A DNA stretch of 63,933 bases, the filler included, from Olpidium bornovanus S191 (Eukaryota; Fungi; Olpidiomycota), in the NCBI GenBank assembly GCA_017911155.1. It is 29 parts of 29 records of this genome, joined end to end, with 100 filler letters (N's around TTAATTAATTAA, not from the genome) between each part and the next. Parts side by side here need not be neighbours in the genome. Positions count along the whole stretch, not along the records: positions 1 to 4,939 come from JAEFCI010001363.1; 28 more parts are not named here. The stretch is one strand, 5' to 3'. Below are positions 79 to 11,660 of the stretch, piece by piece (within the stretch, counting starts at the first letter, position 1; every line of letters begins with the position of its first letter). The position numbers and the translations under genes were made by a program. The notes under the pieces are model-generated. The model was not told the origin of the DNA. It saw only the letters and a program-made list of their open reading frames with translations, and made no database searches.

Positions 79-798
79 GAGAAAGGAGCGCGCGGGAGAT
101 GCTTCGGGAGAGTCGCGCGGAGGCGGCGCCCGGTTACTTACCCGGGCCCGCTCGAAAAAATATCCAAAAACCCGGCCGCCCCCCCCCCCCCCCCCCCCCC
201 CCCGCCCCCTTTCCCCCCCCCCCCCCCCCCTCCCCCGCCTTACACACACGCGCACACACGCGCACACGCCCCGGAAGACGCGAGCGAGGAGGGAAAGGAA
301 AAAAAGAATTGTTAGGAATAAAAGGGGAACCACGAGCTACCGTAGCACTGCGTAGCACTCCCTTCCAAACCGTTAAACTCCCCGTCCAACCATTGACTTT
401 CCCTTGCCCAAAGGAAGAGAAGCCGTTCGTCGGCACACCGCTCTCGCCGTCCATCGGCCTCCCGCTCACGCCGTCCGTCGGCGCTCGCGAAGAGAAGCCG
501 TCCGTCGGCGGTCGAGAAGAAAAGACATCCGTCGACGACTACCCAAAAAAAAAAAAAAAAAAAAAAAAAAACGCCACCCGTTGGCACAACCCAAAACCCC
601 CAAGAAGAGAAGGGACGAAGAGGGCCAACCATGCGGCCGCAACACCTACACCCCGTGCGGTGGACAATTGCGCCATGCTCGAGCTGAAGGAACTACAACG
701 CCAGAGGGAGAACCGCACAAACTGCCATCTGAGGCCTACAGAACCCCGGTGCGAAGAGGACGCACAAGTACCGTTGAGGACTGTGAGCGTGTAGTAAG

Positions 799-893
799 AA
801 GCCCCTCTCAGAGACTCCATACTGACTAGCGTGTCAAGAGTCTCCCAAGCCCCTCCAGAGACTCCATACTGACTTGCGCGTCAAGAGTCTCCC
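799..893 (+). repeat. Two tandem ~48-bp copies, each with an internal inverted repeat GAGACTC...GAGTCTC
   Basis: aagcccctctcagagactccatactgactagcgtgtcaagagtctccc followed by aagcccctccagagactccatactgacttgcgcgtcaagagtctccc. Confidence 0.9.
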
Positions 894-939
894 AACTCTC
901 AGCGAAGACTCAACAAATCGTAGATTCGGTACTCCTCCG

Positions 940-1760
940 CCACGAGCAAATTCAAAAGACATTGAACTCTCGCTCACCCATGCCAAGGACAACCAGCCGG
1001 GTAGCCCCAGGCGCTGGACTACTTGGAGCGACCTGAAGGATGCTTTAAATGAGCATTTTTTTTTCCCAAGGGAACACTACAGAATAATGGAGAAAACTCT
1101 GACCAATCTCTCCCAACGGAAGTGCGGGATCTCGAGAAAAACATTGAACAGTTTAATGAACTCTACATGCAACTGCCGCCACCGAAGAACGAACTGTACT
1201 GGACAATGAAATTCCATGAGGGCCTTACTGGAGATCGCAAGGGCCTTGTCATGATGATGGAGCCTGACTTCAACCACTTGTTTAAAGTGCAAGAAGCAGC
1301 AAGACGGGATCTGCGCATCATGGGAGACACGGATAGACGACCCCCTCAAGGTGCCGGAGTAGCGGGGACGTCAAACAAGCCGCTACTGTGCCAAACGGTC
1401 ACGCCAACTGCCATGCTGATGAAAAGCAATTGGGGCAACAACGCCAAAATTACATGCTACAACTGTTGTAAATGAGGTCTCATCGCAAGAGAGTGCCGTT
1501 CACCGCCAAAGCACAAACCCCGAAAGGACAGAAATGGTAGAACGTCAAATGAGTCCCCAGGTCCAACCAACGCCAGCGTTGCCTTCTATGCGGGAAAAAA
1601 GGATTCAAAGCAGGAGAACTTTCGTGCTGTCCTGGACAGTGGGTGCACTTGCCAAATGCTCAACCAACAAGAGTGGTTTGCGTCTATGAGCCCCACTTCC
1701 CAAGCAGTATGGACTGCAATGAAGGACAATGATCAGCATGTCAATGCTCAAGGAAATGTG
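940..1760 (+). mobile_element. Degenerate LTR-retrotransposon gag-protease: Retrotrans_gag-type capsid, CCHC knuckle remnant, copia-type aspartic protease
   Basis: TWSDLKDALNEHFFFPREH..., frameshift, DLEKNIEQFNELYMQLP...KFHEGL; CYNCCK*GLIAREC at 1456-1497; in-frame AVLDSGCTCQMLNQQEWFASM from about 1626; cut off at 1760 by TGTAAC. Confidence 0.85.
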
Positions 1761-2054
1761 TGTAACGAGCGAAGTACATAATCTGCGCGTAGCGCTGTCT
1801 GGAGATTGTATTTCCTACACATCGGCGAGCTCCGCTCCCTCAGAGATAGCGCCAGGGTTACCCCTGATCTTGTACCTGATCTTTCTCTCTCTCTCTCTCT
1901 TCCTGTGATGGCAGCGCCCGCACGCCGCCGGTCACGTGATCACGCACATAAACGCCTCGCACGCCGCACTCCTCCTCCTTTTCTCTTCTTCCCGTAACCA
2001 ATTCAAAGGAGAGTGACCGCGTCAAAAGGGAGAGCTTTACGCTGTCCCGCGTCA
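1761..2054 (+). mobile_element. Probable 5' LTR (TG...CA, 294 bp) inserted into the older gag-protease
   Basis: Begins TGTAACG exactly where the protease frame stops; ends GTCA immediately before a PBS. Confidence 0.65.
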
Positions 2055-2066
2055 GGTTATGAGCCC
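2055..2066 (+). promoter_or_regulatory. Primer-binding site GGTTATGAGCCC (initiator tRNA-Met anticodon-arm, half-tRNA type)
   Basis: Complement of GGGCUCAUAACC of fungal tRNAiMet; directly follows CA. Confidence 0.85.
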
Positions 2067-2770
2067 AAGCTGGACGTGAGCCCTCCCCGAAGTCGATAAA
2101 CCGGGCGTGTACTCCCCGGTCACCCTTGCGCGCATCCTTCCGCCGTCGCCGCGCGCCACCGCCGCGCGCCCACCGTCGCCGGCGCAACCGCGCGCATCCT
2201 TTACGCCTCCGCCGCGCAACCGCCGCGCGCCACGGCCGCCGCCGCCGCCGCGCTGTTGTACTAGTTTTGTACATTAATCGGAAAGCGGGGTCAGTCGTTA
2301 AGCCCCAGGGCTTCTCTAGGGCTTGAAGGGAAAAAGCGAATGACAGGGAAAAACCGCTTTGTTCTCTCTCTCTCTCTCTCTTTCGAACTCCCCGGGCGAT
2401 CCGCCGGTTCCGTTCTGTTTGTTCGCGTCCTCTATTCCTCTCTAGGCTAAAACAACTCGGACCGACGTGTTCGTGCTCTAGGAGGGGATGGGGGGGCTTT
2501 CTCTCGCACAAGGTTTTTATATACCAGTCGGCAGTCCTCGCCGCCGCTCTTTTTCCGCCTCCGTTTTCCTTTCCAGGCCGCGCGTTACGCGTCGTGTTCA
2601 AGCGTCTTATTTCTTCCCCGCAGCTCGGTTCCGCGGCGAAATAAATCGATATTCCGGCCCCCCCCCCCCTCTCCTTCCCGACGCGTCCTCCTCTCGATCC
2701 TCACCCGCACGGCCCCCTCCTTCCTCGGGCGGTCCGTCACCACGCCTGGAAATTCTTCCACAGCGCGCCC

Positions 2771-2870
2771 ACCGCCGCCGTCGCCGCGCGCCACCGCCGC
2801 CGTCGCCGCGCGCCACCGCCGCCGTCGCCGCGCGCCACCGCCGCCGCCGCCGCGCGCCCACCGCCGCCGC
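2771..2870 (+). repeat. 22-bp GC-rich minisatellite x4 (accgccgccgtcgccgcgcgcc); related array at 2140-2250
   Basis: Units start at 2771, 2793, 2815, 2837. Confidence 0.9.
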
Positions 2871-3754
2871 CACTGCGGTCATCCTTTCGGTCTCGCCGGC
2901 GCAACCGCGGCCATCCTGCCACAAAGGAAAACCAAAACAAGGTCAGCGCGTCGTCAGCAGCACCAACGAGCAGGTCGGCATCTGTCGGTGGCACGATACA
3001 GACACGCGGCAGGACGGCGAGAGCAGCAACTGCAGCTCACGCTTTCTCGTCAGCTGCGCCTGCACCCCGCACCGGGACAGCAGGATGACGTTCAACCCGA
3101 GCGACATTGTCAACACCAGCAAGGAGAGCGCCCTCGGATTCGGTTTCACCACGTCTGACACGCCGTGCCCTCCGCCTACACTCCCTGGTGGCTTCCCGTC
3201 AGGTCTGACCCCCGCATCAATGGCTGCGCTTTTGGGAAAATGGGCAAGCAGTTGAAGACAGGCGGCGGCGGGCCTTGTGGAAAGTCGTTGTTCCAGCTTT
3301 TCCACTCAAAACTCCAAAACTCGGCCTCTGAATTCCAGTAATCTCGAGCTTCCTCTCCGTCTCTCCTCCTCTCTTCCTCTCTTACTCCTTCTGTAGTTCG
3401 TTCTGCTCTACGGCTCTAGCACTGCTCGAGGACGTGTTCATTCTACTCTATGAGGGTTTTCGCCGCGCGTGGGTGTTCGGGGAGTCGCTACGGGATTTTC
3501 GAAGGCGGGGGGAGGGAAGAAATTTCTAGTTCCTTTTAGGGGCGGGGGGATCCATACGCGTGCCGAGGCACAACGTGTATCTATTCCTTTCCAGCAGCCT
3601 TTCCGGCAGCCCAGCCTGTTGCCCCCATTCTTTGGTGGCGTCTTGGAATTTTTTTTATAATCGTGGTTTTCTCCGTAACAGATTTGAACAGATTTGGAAT
3701 TCTTCCACTCTCCCTCCGTACGCCCGACCCCCCTGAGCTTCTCACTTCACAACA

Positions 3755-4282
3755 GTGCTACCTTTTCCGGTCACCCCGCCACGCGGGTTCTTCCCAGGAT
3801 GTCTGCAGTCACTTCCTGACGAGCTTGGGAACCGTCTGCACATCAAACCCACCATCGCTGGACAGGCTGTTGGTGAGGAGCACGTTGCGGCGCGAGTCCC
3901 TGGTGGTGGACTGTCGCAAGACACCGCACACGCTTCCTACGCAGCTGATACATATTTCCCGGTGAGCGAACATGATGAAGAGGTCAAAGTGCCCGAAACC
4001 GGAATATACTCTCAGTATTCTGTTCTGCGCTGTTTTGTCCCCACGACTGCTTCGGCGTACAACCCTTGCCTGTACCCTCCGGGGCCTCACCCCTTTTTCA
4101 GCGAGGGCGTCAGGCATGTCGCAATTGATGCGCATAACAATCAGCACTATGGAGCTCCCAACGACTGGCCGCCACGTCCCTCTGGACCCACGGTATATCC
4201 CATGACGTACGCCCAGTACCCAGCAGCAGCGCATCTGGTGGTAGTGTTGTGGTGTGCGTGGTTCCGGCGAAGGTTTCTGGTG
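3755..4282 (+). CDS. Orphan ORF in the retroelement block, interrupted by the adjacent LTR
   Basis: Open frame of about 175 non-repetitive codons; no family recognised. Confidence 0.25.
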
Positions 4283-4662
4283 TGCCAGGGTTACCCTGGT
4301 ATAAACCGTAAAAAAAAAAGCCAGGTGGGCGCCAAATACTCATCGAGTTTAAGGTTTAGGTTAAGTTTCGAATAGGAAGAAGCCCCTGTTACGTTATTCT
4401 GGTTTTCATTGGTCCATTTCCAATGGGGCTCTGTTTCCGGTGAACCTCCCCTCTCGGGGAATTTTATTCTTGTCCCTATTGGCCTCCACCTTTTCCAAAC
4501 TTTCCGAGCAGCCCCCCCCCCCCCCCCACCCCCCGGAACCCCCCCTTCTTTCAACCCAACCCCCCTGTAATATGCCGGCAAAACTTCGAATTCGGAACTC
4601 AAGTTTTATTCTCGTGTGGTGTTCGGGTTTCATTGTTTGTTTTACGCGTACTCTACGTTACA
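4283..4662 (-). mobile_element. 3' LTR (~380 bp) of a Ty3/gypsy chromovirus
   Basis: Minus strand GGGGAGG polypurine tract (4663-4669), then TGTAAC; ends CA at 4283; homologous to 49223-49480. Confidence 0.75.
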
Positions 4663-4701
4663 CCTCCCCAAAGCTCGACTTCTAGGAGCTTTTCGCTTCC
4701 G

Positions 4702-4939
4702 TCATTGATTCACATGACGAGTCTCGTACTCTAAAACCACAGTCGGTGCAGCCTGTGCAAGCTCCATTGCAGCGCGCCAGGAGTCTCTACTGGCATCGCA
4801 TCTGCGCCACCTGACGAAGTACTGTTTGCCGTTCTTGGAGAACTTGTGCTTCAAGATGCGGTCAACAGCAAACTCCTCCTGATTGAGGACGCCTGGTGGA
4901 TGTCCTAGCTGGACCTGTTCCTCCACGTCGTCCCGTTGA
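4702..4939 (-). mobile_element. Chromodomain at the C-terminus of a Ty3/gypsy integrase (partial)
   Basis: EEFAVDRILKHKFSKNGKQYFVRWRRCDASRDSW, followed by PPT and LTR. Confidence 0.85.
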
Positions 4940-5039
4940 NNNNNNNNNNNNNNNNNNNNNNNNNNNNNNNNNNNNNNNNNNNNTTAATTAATTAANNNNN
5001 NNNNNNNNNNNNNNNNNNNNNNNNNNNNNNNNNNNNNNN
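4940..5039. other. Artificial contig spacer (44 N + TTAATTAATTAA + 44 N); 28 such spacers split the window into 29 contigs
   Basis: Identical 100-bp structure at every gap; the 12-mer carries TAA stops in all six frames. Confidence 0.98.
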
Positions 5040-6942: not shown

Positions 6943-8226
6943 GTGGGAACATACATCTACCCTGTTCAACTCCCTTTGAAAGAGTCCCGGTCCCACTCGG
7001 ACGTCGCTCCTCCGACCTTTCTGAACCTTCGGCAGTCGGGAACATGTCGCCCCACCCTGGCGAACCGGGCAACACGCGCGTCGGAATGCGAGCATCTTTG
7101 GATTGTGCAACATGCGTGTGGTGGGGCCCGTTTTGGGCGGGAGGTCGCCCGGGTGCCCCCGAAATGGGCAGGCTCCGGCGGGGAAGCCGGGAAATTGCAA
7201 CGGGGATGTAAAAAGCCTCGCCTGCTGCACGAAAATACGATGCCGACGTCGTTGCCTTTCTCGCCGGGCGCGCCGCGGCAGCTTGTCCGGCGGTGGGCAA
7301 CCGTACCCAGGAGAAAAGCTGCGTGCTGCCCAATCCCGTCGTCGTCGTGCCGGTCGGTGGCCGCGCGGCAGGTGCACTCAGACGCCCCAGAGCCGACACC
7401 GGCGGCGGCGGAGGAGATAAACGGCCCGCCTCTTGAAACCTGTCTCGACGCCCGGGAAGAAGTCACAGAGACCGAGGTTGCGCTGCCGGTCGATTTCACA
7501 CGAGCAGACGCACAGGAGAAGAGCAGGTGGCAGGAGCGCGCAGACATCGCAAAGCCGACGCCGGCGGTGGTGGAGCAAGACGCGCCTGTCCGGACGGGCC
7601 CGTACGCGCGGCTGAAAGTTGCCCAGGTCGAGGACGCACAGCCGGTTGACTTCCCAGGAAGAAACGCACGGCGGCGGAGCAGGTATAAGGAGGAAGCAGA
7701 CCGCTTGGTCACACACGCTCGTGAGCTCTCAGCTGTGCTGAAAAAGAACGACACAAGGCCAGTGGCGCCCATTGTTCCCCCTTTGGAGCCGCCGCGGAGA
7801 GGAATGCTTGTCTCGCCATTCCAAACGACTCCATACTACCCGGATATGGACCCAGCCGCAGAGAAGCTAAGGGAGGTGGAGAGGAGGACCAATGCGTCGC
7901 TCAATGGCAACGTGCTGCAGGCTCTCAGGTACTCGCCTCTGTACAATTTTACGGCGGTGACTCAGCCGCGCACTTCGGGGTCAACGAGTTCTTCTCCGGT
8001 CTCGCCAGTCCGTCCCTCACCGACGACCCAGAAAAGGTCATTGTCTGGGATTTGCAAGCTCCAGGCTTGCCATCTGGACCGAAGCCTCTACGTTGCCGAG
8101 GAAGCATACGTACCAGCCACGCTGGCTTTTCACGTGGATCCGGAAGGAGCAACGCAGGAATTCGGCTTGGAACCCTGTTTGCTTGCGGATGACGATACGC
8201 CTAACACGGTTAGGAACATTTGGTGA
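6943..8226 (+). CDS. Hypothetical, largely disordered protein
   Basis: 427-aa open frame; no domain recognised; true start uncertain. Confidence 0.45.
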   Translation: MGTYIYPVQLPLKESRSHSDVAPPTFLNLRQSGTCRPTLANRATRASECEHLWIVQHACGGARFGREVARVPPKWAGSGGEAGKLQRGCKKPRLLHENTMPTSLPFSPGAPRQLVRRWATVPRRKAACCPIPSSSCRSVAARQVHSDAPEPTPAAAEEINGPPLETCLDAREEVTETEVALPVDFTRADAQEKSRWQERADIAKPTPAVVEQDAPVRTGPYARLKVAQVEDAQPVDFPGRNARRRSRYKEEADRLVTHARELSAVLKKNDTRPVAPIVPPLEPPRRGMLVSPFQTTPYYPDMDPAAEKLREVERRTNASLNGNVLQALRYSPLYNFTAVTQPRTSGSTSSSPVSPVRPSPTTQKRSLSGICKLQACHLDRSLYVAEEAYVPATLAFHVDPEGATQEFGLEPCLLADDDTPNTVRNIW

Positions 8227-8660
8227 GGTTGGCACCGCACATTAGCACCCGCGTAAAATGGCCTCCGTTAATGGCCTCTTCGAAGTCAACAGGTGCGTTT
8301 TTGTAGTCTTATTGACAGCATGCGACGCAATTAGGTCTGGCTCTCTTTTTCTACCGCTGGGCATTATTTATCACGGCGATGGTTAGTTGGCGCACAAGAA
8401 TAACAACTTACGATCAGTTGAACTTTTCATAGATGATCTCTTCAAAAATGATAATTCCCATTGATGTAATCGTCGACAAACCTTTCTCATTTTTGCACGA
8501 TATTTTGCACGATGATTTTGCCTCGGGTGTTCCGCTTTCATGTAAAAATAACCCCCCCGAAGAAAAATGGAGGAATGGCGGCGCCTTCAAACCCCACAAC
8601 AAAAAACTGCCTCGCTTTTGCTTAACACGGCAGGAAGGCAAAATAACCCCGGTCGGCGCT

Positions 8661-9028
8661 TCACCCTCCGTTCGACCGACTGCTCAACGGCACGAACAAC
8701 AGCTCGACTGATTTTTTGACGGATTCGTCGCGGAAGCCGCGGAAGCCGCGGACGCCCCCAGCAGGCAGCCCTCCCTGCCACCCCAAATTCTGTCGGACGA
8801 TACCTGGCTCCGTCAGATTCTCCACGCGCCGCGGCACCGGCGCAACGAGATTGGCAGGCAATTCGGCATCCGGCGACGGGGCGGAGACTTTGTCGGCGAG
8901 AAATTGACATTGAATATATGCATCGTCGACGAGTGGGTTGGGAGGCGGATCGTAGTCCTGACCCAAAGGCTCGTCGTCCCCCCAGTATTGAATGCCCGAC
9001 GGCAGGAACAAAAACTCGAGTTCGCATG
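8661..9028 (-). CDS. Partial member of an unknown family, paralog of the 20941-22153 gene
   Basis: ELEFLFLPSGIQYWG...DYDPPPNPLVDDAYIQ...VS...AEL aligns without gaps to the 21314 ORF. Confidence 0.7.
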
Positions 9029-9128
9029 NNNNNNNNNNNNNNNNNNNNNNNNNNNNNNNNNNNNNNNNNNNNTTAATTAATTAANNNNNNNNNNNNNNNN
9101 NNNNNNNNNNNNNNNNNNNNNNNNNNNN

Positions 9129-10200
9129 CCAGCCTGTACTGTAGCCGACGGCAACGAACACCGGAGTTTCCGTGCTAGACGTTCGCAAAATTTCTCTGGA
9201 ATTACGAACGAACTACTGGGGCTGATCCTTCCACCTCGCTGTTGAAAGTCCGTACCTTGCGCACTGCGACGGCGGGACAAACAGCGGTAGGCAAGATATG
9301 GCCGTGATGGTTTCCCTACGGCCGGAGGGACGCTGAGAAAGGTGAACGACTGCGTTGAGATGCCGTACACCTTCTTCTGACTATTGCGGGTTCAGGGTAC
9401 GAACCATTCCAAAAAAAACGGACGAACCTGTCTTCGAGGCAACCCGAACCTTGACCGACAATTTCCATGCCTACGTCGGCAGAGGCGGCGGAGACGTTCT
9501 CCGTGCGACGGGCGTGTCTACTCTCCTTCCGGGCGAGAACGAAGAACTGCTTTTTCGCTGCGCACGCGATCCGCTCGCCGCCCTCCAGGATGGAAAACTT
9601 GCTGTTCCGGTCCAACACGAGTACCCCATCGGAGTCGCCGTTGCCGGGGGCAGCGGACAGGTTTGCGGTGCTGGAGCCGGACGAGATTGACTCCGCGGAC
9701 CTGCTCCGACCGGAGACGTGCGAGGTAGGGTGCTATCGGTGTGGGGCGGGGGAAGTGGTGGGTGGTGACCAACAGTTTTCCCAGTTACGTGACGAAAGAA
9801 AGGTCAGCGTTCACCGCCGGATACACGCTCGATGCCAGACCGGAGAGGGACGGGGAGGAGGAAGGAGGAATCTTACCGCATCCCTCTCGGCGAAAAGCGG
9901 CGACGCCGGCGACGGCGCGTTTTCGGGCGAGGGGAGAGAGTCGTAGTTTCTCCGCTGATGCGACGCGCGGGCGATGCCGGCGACAACCTCTCGGGGAAGT
10001 CGCGCGTGCGGACGCAGCGAAAGGGAAAGCGCGGGCGGCGCAGGCGAACCGCCGGGCGAGCGCGGGGAGGCGGCGGTGGCGACTGTTGCAACGACGACGG
10101 CGGCCCTTCCGCGCGGGAACTCGCGTTCTGCTTGGGGGTCGGGCGACGCTACGGTGGATTCGCCGGCAGCGCCAGGGTAAGCGGCAGCAGAAGCCAAACC
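9129..10200 (-). CDS. Hypothetical spliced protein (partial)
   Basis: Minus-strand frames joinable through GT-AG introns (donors near 9875 and 9420); no family recognised. Confidence 0.35.
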
Positions 10201-11660
10201 GCCTGTCATGGTCCCTTTCTGATCGCTCTTTTCCGCTCTCTCTCCCTCTCTCTCTCTCTCTCTGCCTCTCCCCGGACTGCCGCGTGCCTCCTCCTCCTCT
10301 TCCTCCTCTCCTTCTCGTGCGGTCGATCCGCCTGTCTCAAAGTCCGGTTGCCATCCCCCGCCCAGACTCAAACACAACCCACGCCGGCGTCACCCCCACC
10401 GCCCCCGCGGAAGAAACCGCAAAATACGCTTTTATCTGCTTCTGGTGACCCGGGAGACCGCACGCGCTACACGCCGGACGACTGCAGACGACGAAGAGGA
10501 CAGAGCCTGGCCGCGGCCGACTTGACCACCCCACATACACTAAAAGCTTCCCATTTTCCCCGAGCCGTCGCCGCCTCCCCCCCTCTCACTCGCGCACGCA
10601 CTTTTTTTTTTTCTTTCTTTCTTTGTTTTTCTTCACAAACAGTCTGGGTGACCTCCGGACTCTTGGTGATACCGGCCCAGCGTTGTAAACCTCGCGTCAA
10701 ATCAAGAATTCGGTATGCCGCAATTTTCGATCGGAGACCTAACCCCTGGCCTATTGGCTGTCTTCGTGTCGTCGTGCAGACGAATGTATGTTTGTACAGG
10801 AGAAACGTTACGGGTCTAATGCGCATTGTACCCTGAACGCAGACAAGTTTTTTTGGGCGACCGTTGAGGGGAATGGCGCAAAACAGTTACATATAAATAG
10901 GACGAAAATGCTATGAAAGAATGATTCATGATCNNNNNNNNNNNNNNNNNNNNNNNNNNNNNNNNNNNNNNNNNNNNTTAATTAATTAANNNNNNNNNNN
11001 NNNNNNNNNNNNNNNNNNNNNNNNNNNNNNNNNCATGCCCTGAACGTTCGGGAAGTGGAACGCACAGAATTTGAAAAAAAAAATTGACCACGCTCCCAAT
11101 TCCCCCTCCCCCTCCCCCTGGTTGAATTGATTCCGTGGAGGGAGAAAGGGTATCAAGAGAAACGAAAGAAAAAGAAACGAGAAAGAAACGAAAAAAACGA
11201 GAGAGCGAGAGAGAGAGGGAAAGAGAGTGCCGACACTTCTCCCGCAATTTCGATACGCGGGCGCGAGTGGAGCTTTCCCCCCTTTCTGGCACTGGGAAAC
11301 GCCCACTAAACGGGGTCCCGGTGTTAGTCCCGCAACAAAGCTTTCCGTAGGAAACCGTGCAGCAACGCCCAATTTCGAACCGCGCCGGAAACGAGATGCC
11401 AACCAGGAGGGTGGTGGGGGAATATTCAAGTAGTTCAAACCAAACCTGTTCAGGGAACAGCCGCGACGGATGCCGAACGTCAGCCGGATGGCCGTGGTAA
11501 AAACGGAGAGGGGTCGAAGGAAAGCAGTAAACGCGGAGCCAACGAGGAGTGAAGGAGCGCAATTATCTAGGCTGTTATAGAAATTGCGCAAAAAAACCCC
11601 CCTCCGGCACGGCACAGGATAAAGCTCCGGCCGACTCTGGGTGGACGGTTCGCGCCGAAA

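Follow-up and report, generated by a model that had tools for sequence, protein, structure and literature searches.

A decayed gag-protease remnant from Olpidium bornovanus combines a PF03732-scoring capsid with a Ty1/copia-type protease

RESULTS

A gag-protease remnant of an LTR retrotransposon

The window analyzed here is a stretch of 63,933 nucleotides from the Olpidium bornovanus S191 assembly, filler letters included, and its first 4,939 bp correspond to one complete contig (JAEFCI010001363.1). This contig carries, at positions 848 to 1781 of the plus strand, the gag-protease remnant of an LTR retrotransposon, which comprises a capsid, a single CCHC knuckle, and ~50 residues from the start of a protease (Table 1). 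The remnant is dead, internally deleted, and truncated at its 3' end.

Table 1. Parts of the gag-protease remnant, with positions along the window and the frame or match by which each part was placed
Feature	Position	Strand	Frame and evidence
gag N-terminus remnant (pre-capsid)	848-973	+	third frame; tblastn with P0004 residues 29-70: 48% identity, E 1.9e-5
capsid N-terminal half	967-1125	+	frame 826-1206; PF03732 positions 15-60 of 97
frame break in capsid	1123-1127		one-base shift relative to the frame of the relatives
capsid C-terminal half	1125-1346	+	frame 1053-1472; tblastn with P0003, P0004, P0005, and P0006: E 1e-32 to 9e-15
CCHC knuckle remnant (nucleocapsid)	1455-1496	+	TGA at 1473-1475; aligned with P0003 and P0006
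pre-protease motif ASVAFYAG	1572-1595	+	linker between knuckle and protease; P0004 counterpart ANVAFHAN
copia-type aspartic protease, N-terminal part	1629-1766	+	frame 1476-1778; PF22936 Pol_BBD positions 2-47 of 81

When the three forward frames were translated, the capsid and protease motif strings came out where an earlier note on this DNA had read them. The note had also proposed that one frame runs from 1122 through the knuckle into the protease; this holds for the C-terminal half of the capsid, the knuckle, and the protease, but the N-terminal half of the capsid lies in another frame. When the relatives described below (P0002 to P0006) were used as tblastn queries, the gag homology fell in three stretches, 848-973, 967-1125/1128, and 1128-1526, the matches in the last frame running from 1059. 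The pre-capsid stretch shares the motif IVDSVLLR.EQ with P0004, and ~140 residues that P0004 has between this stretch and the capsid are missing from the remnant. The N-terminal half of the capsid holds W.DLKDAL...FFPREH...L.NLSQ, with the W at 1024-1026, and is 68% identical to P0002 (E 2e-19, tblastn), while the C-terminal half reads LEK.IE.FN.L...LP...W.MKFH.GL...VM.M.P...VQEAARRD. At the frame break, both frames match the unbroken ...SQ.KCRDLEK... of P0002 and overlap at base 1125.

The knuckle of P0003 and P0006 reads C.NC.KMGHI...C, and the remnant has K-stop-G-L-I in its place, with a leucine replacing the histidine. Since the single TGA, which the earlier note had rightly placed in the knuckle, occurs where the relatives have a sense codon, it represents decay; a programmed stop between gag and pol was considered and ruled out, the relatives reading through at that position of the knuckle. 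Downstream of the pre-protease motif, of which GLHVACTAG in P0003 is possibly a degenerate version, the D-S-G of the protease is found at 1635-1643 within AVLDSGCTCQM, and a TAA at 1779-1781 closes the frame after ~50 residues. Neither an integrase nor a reverse transcriptase was found on the 4,939-bp contig, whose nine other long frames are without a retroelement domain, and the contig has no LTR pair (its direct repeats are only low-complexity runs) and no tRNA-like or Rfam feature. The segment that links the knuckle to the protease has no LTR-sized repeat, nor space for an LTR.

The remainder of the contig

A protein is deposited for positions 99-4938 of the contig as "MAG: hypothetical protein, Olpidium bornovanus" (KAG5462956.1, here P0001; 934 residues, 99% identical to the query). 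This model is stitched together from low-complexity frames rich in proline, arginine, and lysine and from the remnant, the frame break and the TGA of which it skips, and it is almost certainly a spurious model and not a real gene. At the right end of the contig, a frame at 4705-4938 of the minus strand contains a chromodomain (PF00385, E 9.2e-12) and runs off the contig; this frame supplies the C terminus of a Ty3/gypsy integrase of the chromovirus type, and the 3' LTR of this chromovirus should be located just below 4705. We considered whether the gag belongs to the chromovirus and ruled this out, given that the two are on opposite strands and 2.9 kb apart.

Several repeats were also noted. 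The 64-base G run at 13-76 and the 58-base C-rich run at 179-236 form an inverted repeat, 88-92% complementary, which looks like a sequencing or assembly artifact. A 47-base tandem repeat in two copies at 799-911 (83-94% matches, depending on the register) lies directly upstream of, and overlaps, the gag N-terminus remnant. GC-rich tandem arrays with periods of 63, 30, 13, and 22 bases occupy 2128-2253 and 2763-2869, within the 2.9 kb that separate the two retroelement fragments; they match no protein family, and the 22-base unit is present in 4.8 copies at 96%.

The remnant belongs to a small and old family

An exhaustive HMMER search of 1.84 billion representative proteins returned only six relatives, namely, four O. 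bornovanus accessions, the spurious P0001 among them, and two proteins from ~1-kb Logan read-assembly contigs. The contigs of the relatives are all 1-5 kb long, and the family is so far known only from O. bornovanus and these two anonymous read-assembly contigs. The gag and protease pieces were searched separately, never as a joined or read-through protein, and the public spliced model P0001 served as a query within a single exon only. In word-index searches of proteins, neither the capsid piece nor the protease exon of P0001 nor the gag alignment retrieved anything other than the queries; the gag alignment found no relatives in contigs from metagenomes, viruses, or prokaryote genomes; and the gag profile had 0 matches at E<=10 among PDB sequences.

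P0004, which is encoded on a separate 2.7-kb contig, shows the gag, the pre-protease motif, and a protease tail arranged as in the remnant. The two tails agree at 12 of 25 residues (E 2e-4), and that of P0004 extends further. Because gag and protease tail are colinear in P0004, their junction is a trait of the family, and the possibility, raised by the earlier note, that it is unique to one copy is thereby answered in the negative. The copies share 39-68% protein identity, and the family is therefore old. We also observed that in P0003, encoded on another Olpidium contig, residues 119-141 upstream of the gag bear a weak resemblance to the linker that precedes the remnant's protease (E 0.019, with 9 of 24 residues in common), as would be expected of short gag-protease units arranged in series.

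Profile matches of the capsid and the protease

The Pfam gathering cut-offs are 24.1 bits for PF03732 and 27 bits for PF22936. The N-terminal half of the remnant's capsid matches PF03732 with 20.2 bits (E 6.9e-4), which is below the cut-off because the frame break splits the domain. The PF03732-type gag proposed by the earlier note is borne out by four relatives, which all score above the cut-off (P0003, 40.8 bits; P0002, 39.5; P0005, 36.7; P0004, 27.7), with a best E value of 2.6e-10 and a coverage of positions 2-96 of 97. PF14223 and PF14244 were not matched at E<=1 by these four relatives, nor at E<=10 by the pieces of the remnant. P0003 has an intact zf-CCHC (PF00098, 27.8 bits), and P0005 weakly matches PF19259 Ty3_capsid.

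The protease was likewise correctly recognized as copia type: the piece matches PF22936 Pol_BBD above the cut-off (30.4 bits, E 5e-7), and frame 1476-1778 matches no further protease family at E<=10, neither RVP, RVP_2, and Asp_protease_2 nor gag-asp_proteas. No pol domain past the start of the protease was detected in any of the relatives found. The combination of a PF03732-scoring capsid with a copia-type protease is real and uncommon, and the pairing of such a protease with a capsid that scores with PF03732 only characterizes the family and is not an accident of the locus.

The predicted capsid fold

AlphaFold models of P0005 and P0002, computed with a seven-row alignment, have a helical core with a pLDDT of ~70-88, and the P0005 model comprises 8 helices (pLDDT 70-88). 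The top Foldseek matches in the PDB were dArc1, PNMA2, Arc, the dArc2 C-lobe, Ty3, HIV CA, and PEG10 CA-CTD; dArc1, the dArc2 C-lobe, and PEG10 CA-CTD reached probabilities of 0.97-1.0 and single-lobe target TM scores of 0.62-0.71, at E values of at least 0.13. Neither the Ty1 nor the Drosophila Copia capsid was among the top 50 PDB matches, and caulimovirus coat proteins and retroviral Gag ranked highest among viral models. All Foldseek E values were above 0.02 (at least 0.13 for the PDB). The capsids of Copia, Ty3, Arc, and HIV have one common fold (PMC11835246, PMC6525542), and shared ancestry as well as a shared fold is documented for these capsids (PMC4350172, PMC8321522, PMC6525542, PMC11835246). 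The predicted fold points to a retroelement capsid, and it has no power to separate the superfamilies.

PF03732 is also matched by ordinary copia gags

A degenerate DNA pattern of the canonical copia protease motif, which had 0 matches in viral contigs, fetched 120 metagenome loci, and in 41 of these the motif is preceded by 120 or more open residues; all 41 frames were scanned individually against Pfam. Drawn by the canonical motif, the sample is biased toward ordinary copia lineages. Pol_BBD was matched by 37 frames, PF14223 by 31, and PF14244 by 3, and 9 of the 41 matched no Pfam gag family, from which it follows that copia capsids are more diverse than the copia profiles cover. PF03732 was matched by five frames (L113, 28.3 bits; L087, 27.9; L020, 24.0; L055, 21.7; L099, 20.8), two of them above the cut-off. 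All five match PF14223 and/or PF14244 on the same stretch, and L087 scores higher with PF03732 than with PF14223 (21.3 bits). The W..L, L..L.Q, and F.MGL blocks are also present in these PF03732-matching copia gags. No frame among the 41 matched PF03732 alone, and their maximum of 28.3 bits compares with 40.8 bits in the Olpidium family.

Aligned with hhalign to the 41 copia gags, the Olpidium gag profile gave a probability of 94.7% (E 6e-8) over 141 columns, which include the capsid and the knuckle; against the copia gag of L087 alone, the identity was 28% over 101 columns (E 5.7e-4), a score similar to that obtained with the gypsy gag of L032 (E 7.5e-5). The match to L087, L106, L108, L113, and L020 together was weak (probability 17%), and a profile built locally from 32 ordinary copia capsids scored the Olpidium gags at only 9-10 bits. 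A search of 5,421 six-frame segments from the 120 loci with the Olpidium gag profile gave a single capsid-level match, L032:11011-11355(-), at E 0.005. This segment is a gag, and the element to which it belongs, though decayed, is clearly Ty3/gypsy, with the complete order PF03732, Asp_protease_2/RVP_2, RVT_1, RT_RNaseH_2, Integrase_H2C2, SH3_Tf2-1; no other usable gypsy gag was present among the fetched loci. In contrast to the remnant, the L032 element matches three gypsy-type protease families.

According to the literature, copia polyproteins as well as gypsy ones carry PF03732 (PMC4350172), and the gag families considered here all belong to one Pfam clan, CL0523 (PMC8321522). That a PF03732 gag can accompany a copia pol was mentioned in the literature in one indirect statement (PMC4350172). 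Neither the PF03732 label nor the capsid motif pattern is exclusive to Ty3/gypsy, so that the use of PF03732 as a mark of this superfamily, on which the earlier note relied, is unsafe.

Three loci of the sample deserve mention in their own right. L055:1-1413 (-) is a copia gag-protease frame in which a CCCH-type zinc finger (PF00642, E 1.3e-7) replaces the CCHC knuckle; L087:9441-10739 (+) combines the canonical copia protease motif with an N-terminal PF14244 domain; and on the contig of L032, ~2.4 kb separate the gypsy element, at 7373-11355 (-), from a copia protease motif that lies downstream of it on that strand, at 4936-4968 (-), which illustrates how near each other copia and gypsy elements can sit.

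DISCUSSION

On balance, we lean toward the view that the family is a divergent Ty1/copia-type lineage, the capsid of which would lie at the PF03732 end of a capsid clan common to copia and gypsy. Since the clan is shared, an exchange between superfamilies would not be needed to explain such a capsid. The backbone is most likely that of a copia element, an assignment made from ~46 protease residues only. We propose that working copies had one frame encoding capsid, nucleocapsid knuckle, and protease, the first part being a two-lobed capsid of the retroviral type, the second one CCHC knuckle, and the third a copia-type aspartic protease that would open pol ~45 residues beyond the knuckle. Gag-Pol would be made as one polyprotein and cleaved by its own protease, and virus-like particles would assemble around the RNA of the element.

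The family shares with Ty1/copia elements (Pseudoviridae) the presence of gag and of the start of pol in one frame, the single CCHC knuckle, and a PF22936 protease with the D-S-G...M....F...V....G pattern, as in 37 of the 41 sampled frames; it differs from them in that its capsid scores with PF03732 only, without PF14223 or PF14244 at E<=1. The nearest copia counterparts in this comparison form a lineage with an F.MGL-type capsid behind an N-terminal PF14244 domain (L087, L106, L108, L113, L020), and they have a copia protease, the same motif blocks, and a capsid that reaches or nears the PF03732 cut-off (L087, L113), but they keep a PF14223 and/or PF14244 signal, which the Olpidium family does not. 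The gags of Ty3/gypsy elements (Metaviridae), including those of chromoviruses and the domesticated Arc, PNMA, and PEG10, resemble the Olpidium gag by an end-to-end PF03732 match, a weak PF19259 Ty3_capsid match, and a predicted fold whose best matches, at weak E values, are dArc1, PNMA2, Arc, Ty3, and PEG10. In contrast to the proteases of gypsy elements, that of Olpidium matches neither RVP nor RVP_2 nor Asp_protease_2, and an RVT_1 reverse transcriptase is present in no relative.

The earlier note had interpreted the locus as a capsid exchange between the superfamilies, an interpretation that found support in no test that we ran and the PF03732 premise of which has been weakened. A true mosaic, in which a Ty3/gypsy-derived capsid replaced a copia gag, possibly by a route such as template switching between co-packaged RNAs, and then spread as a family, appears unlikely to us, yet several observations speak for it. 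The match to PF03732 spans the whole profile and reaches 40.8 bits without a copia gag match, a situation found in none of the 41 copia frames, but the same profile cross-matches ordinary copia gags. The Olpidium gag profile retrieves the gypsy gag of L032 at the capsid level and not the copia gags, whereas hhalign aligns it to the copia gag profile with a probability of 94.7%. Gypsy-derived capsids lead the fold matches, a ranking of little weight because all Foldseek E values are weak. Finally, gypsy chromoviruses reside in the same genome (the chromodomain on the minus strand), but the exhaustive protein search yielded neither a close gypsy donor nor any other gypsy polyprotein. The preferred reading as a divergent copia lineage could also fail at the backbone, which might be that of a gypsy-related or unclassified LTR lineage whose copia-like protease is its own or was acquired; the order of the pol domains and the type of reverse transcriptase would in that case depart from those of copia. 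This backbone we judge improbable: the protease is above the PF22936 cut-off and without a gypsy-type match, the sequence around D-S-G fits the copia pattern of the 41 sampled frames, and 37 of these match the same PF22936 profile, all of which has to be set against the shortness of the segment that ties the family to copia and the absence of integrase and reverse transcriptase from the contig and from every relative found. Lineages that mix gypsy and copia traits are on record, since Gmr1-like elements, reportedly described by Goodwin and Poulter in 2002, are said to be one; the mixed trait of these animal elements is said to be the order of the pol domains, whereas the Olpidium family mixes the profile types of capsid and protease. 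Moreover, further LTR superfamilies continue to be reported (PMC12440569).

Less probable still is that position ~1780 is a normal end and that the family is nonautonomous, with a gag or a gag plus a protease stub mobilized by the pol of another element. The relatives indeed have no pol domain beyond the start of the protease, but with contigs of 1-5 kb this may reflect the fragmentation of the assembly; the linker-like stretch upstream of the P0003 gag (E 0.019) is compatible with such units, but the protease tail of P0004 is longer than that of the remnant and the contig has no LTR pair. TR-GAG elements with a PF03732-type or UBN2-type gag are known in plants (PMC4350172); they are likewise short, with gag and protease traces and without reverse transcriptase or integrase, and some are of the PF03732 type, but their hosts are plants and not a fungus, and no LTRs were found for the Olpidium remnant. 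As for a local artifact, by which a nested insertion or an assembly chimera would have brought a gypsy gag and a copia protease together at this place only, it is very improbable and largely refuted by the colinear gag and protease tail of P0004 on another contig. The fragmented, metagenome-derived assembly, the G and C runs of 64 and 58 bases with which the contig opens, and the gypsy fragment on the same contig could have raised such a suspicion, but this gypsy fragment is ~2.9 kb away on the opposite strand, and the knuckle, the linker motif, and the protease are found within 140 bases, in one frame and with no LTR between them.

Olpidium is a root-parasitic fungus. Its lineage has been placed as the closest zoosporic relative of terrestrial fungi, and the assignment to O. 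bornovanus as host is that of the depositors, who sequenced a metagenome of nonaxenic zoospores (PMC7865070). The contig does not derive from human DNA. The present basis is one decayed fragment within a fragmented assembly. If the family were to combine a copia pol with a capsid nested among gypsy capsids, it would constitute a clear case of modular exchange of structural genes between superfamilies. Gag evolves fast and is therefore seldom used to classify LTR retrotransposons, and annotation pipelines often equate PF03732 with a gypsy gag and PF14223 with a copia gag. Together, the Olpidium remnant and the five ordinary copia frames among the 41 indicate that the shortcut from PF03732 to gypsy can mislabel elements.
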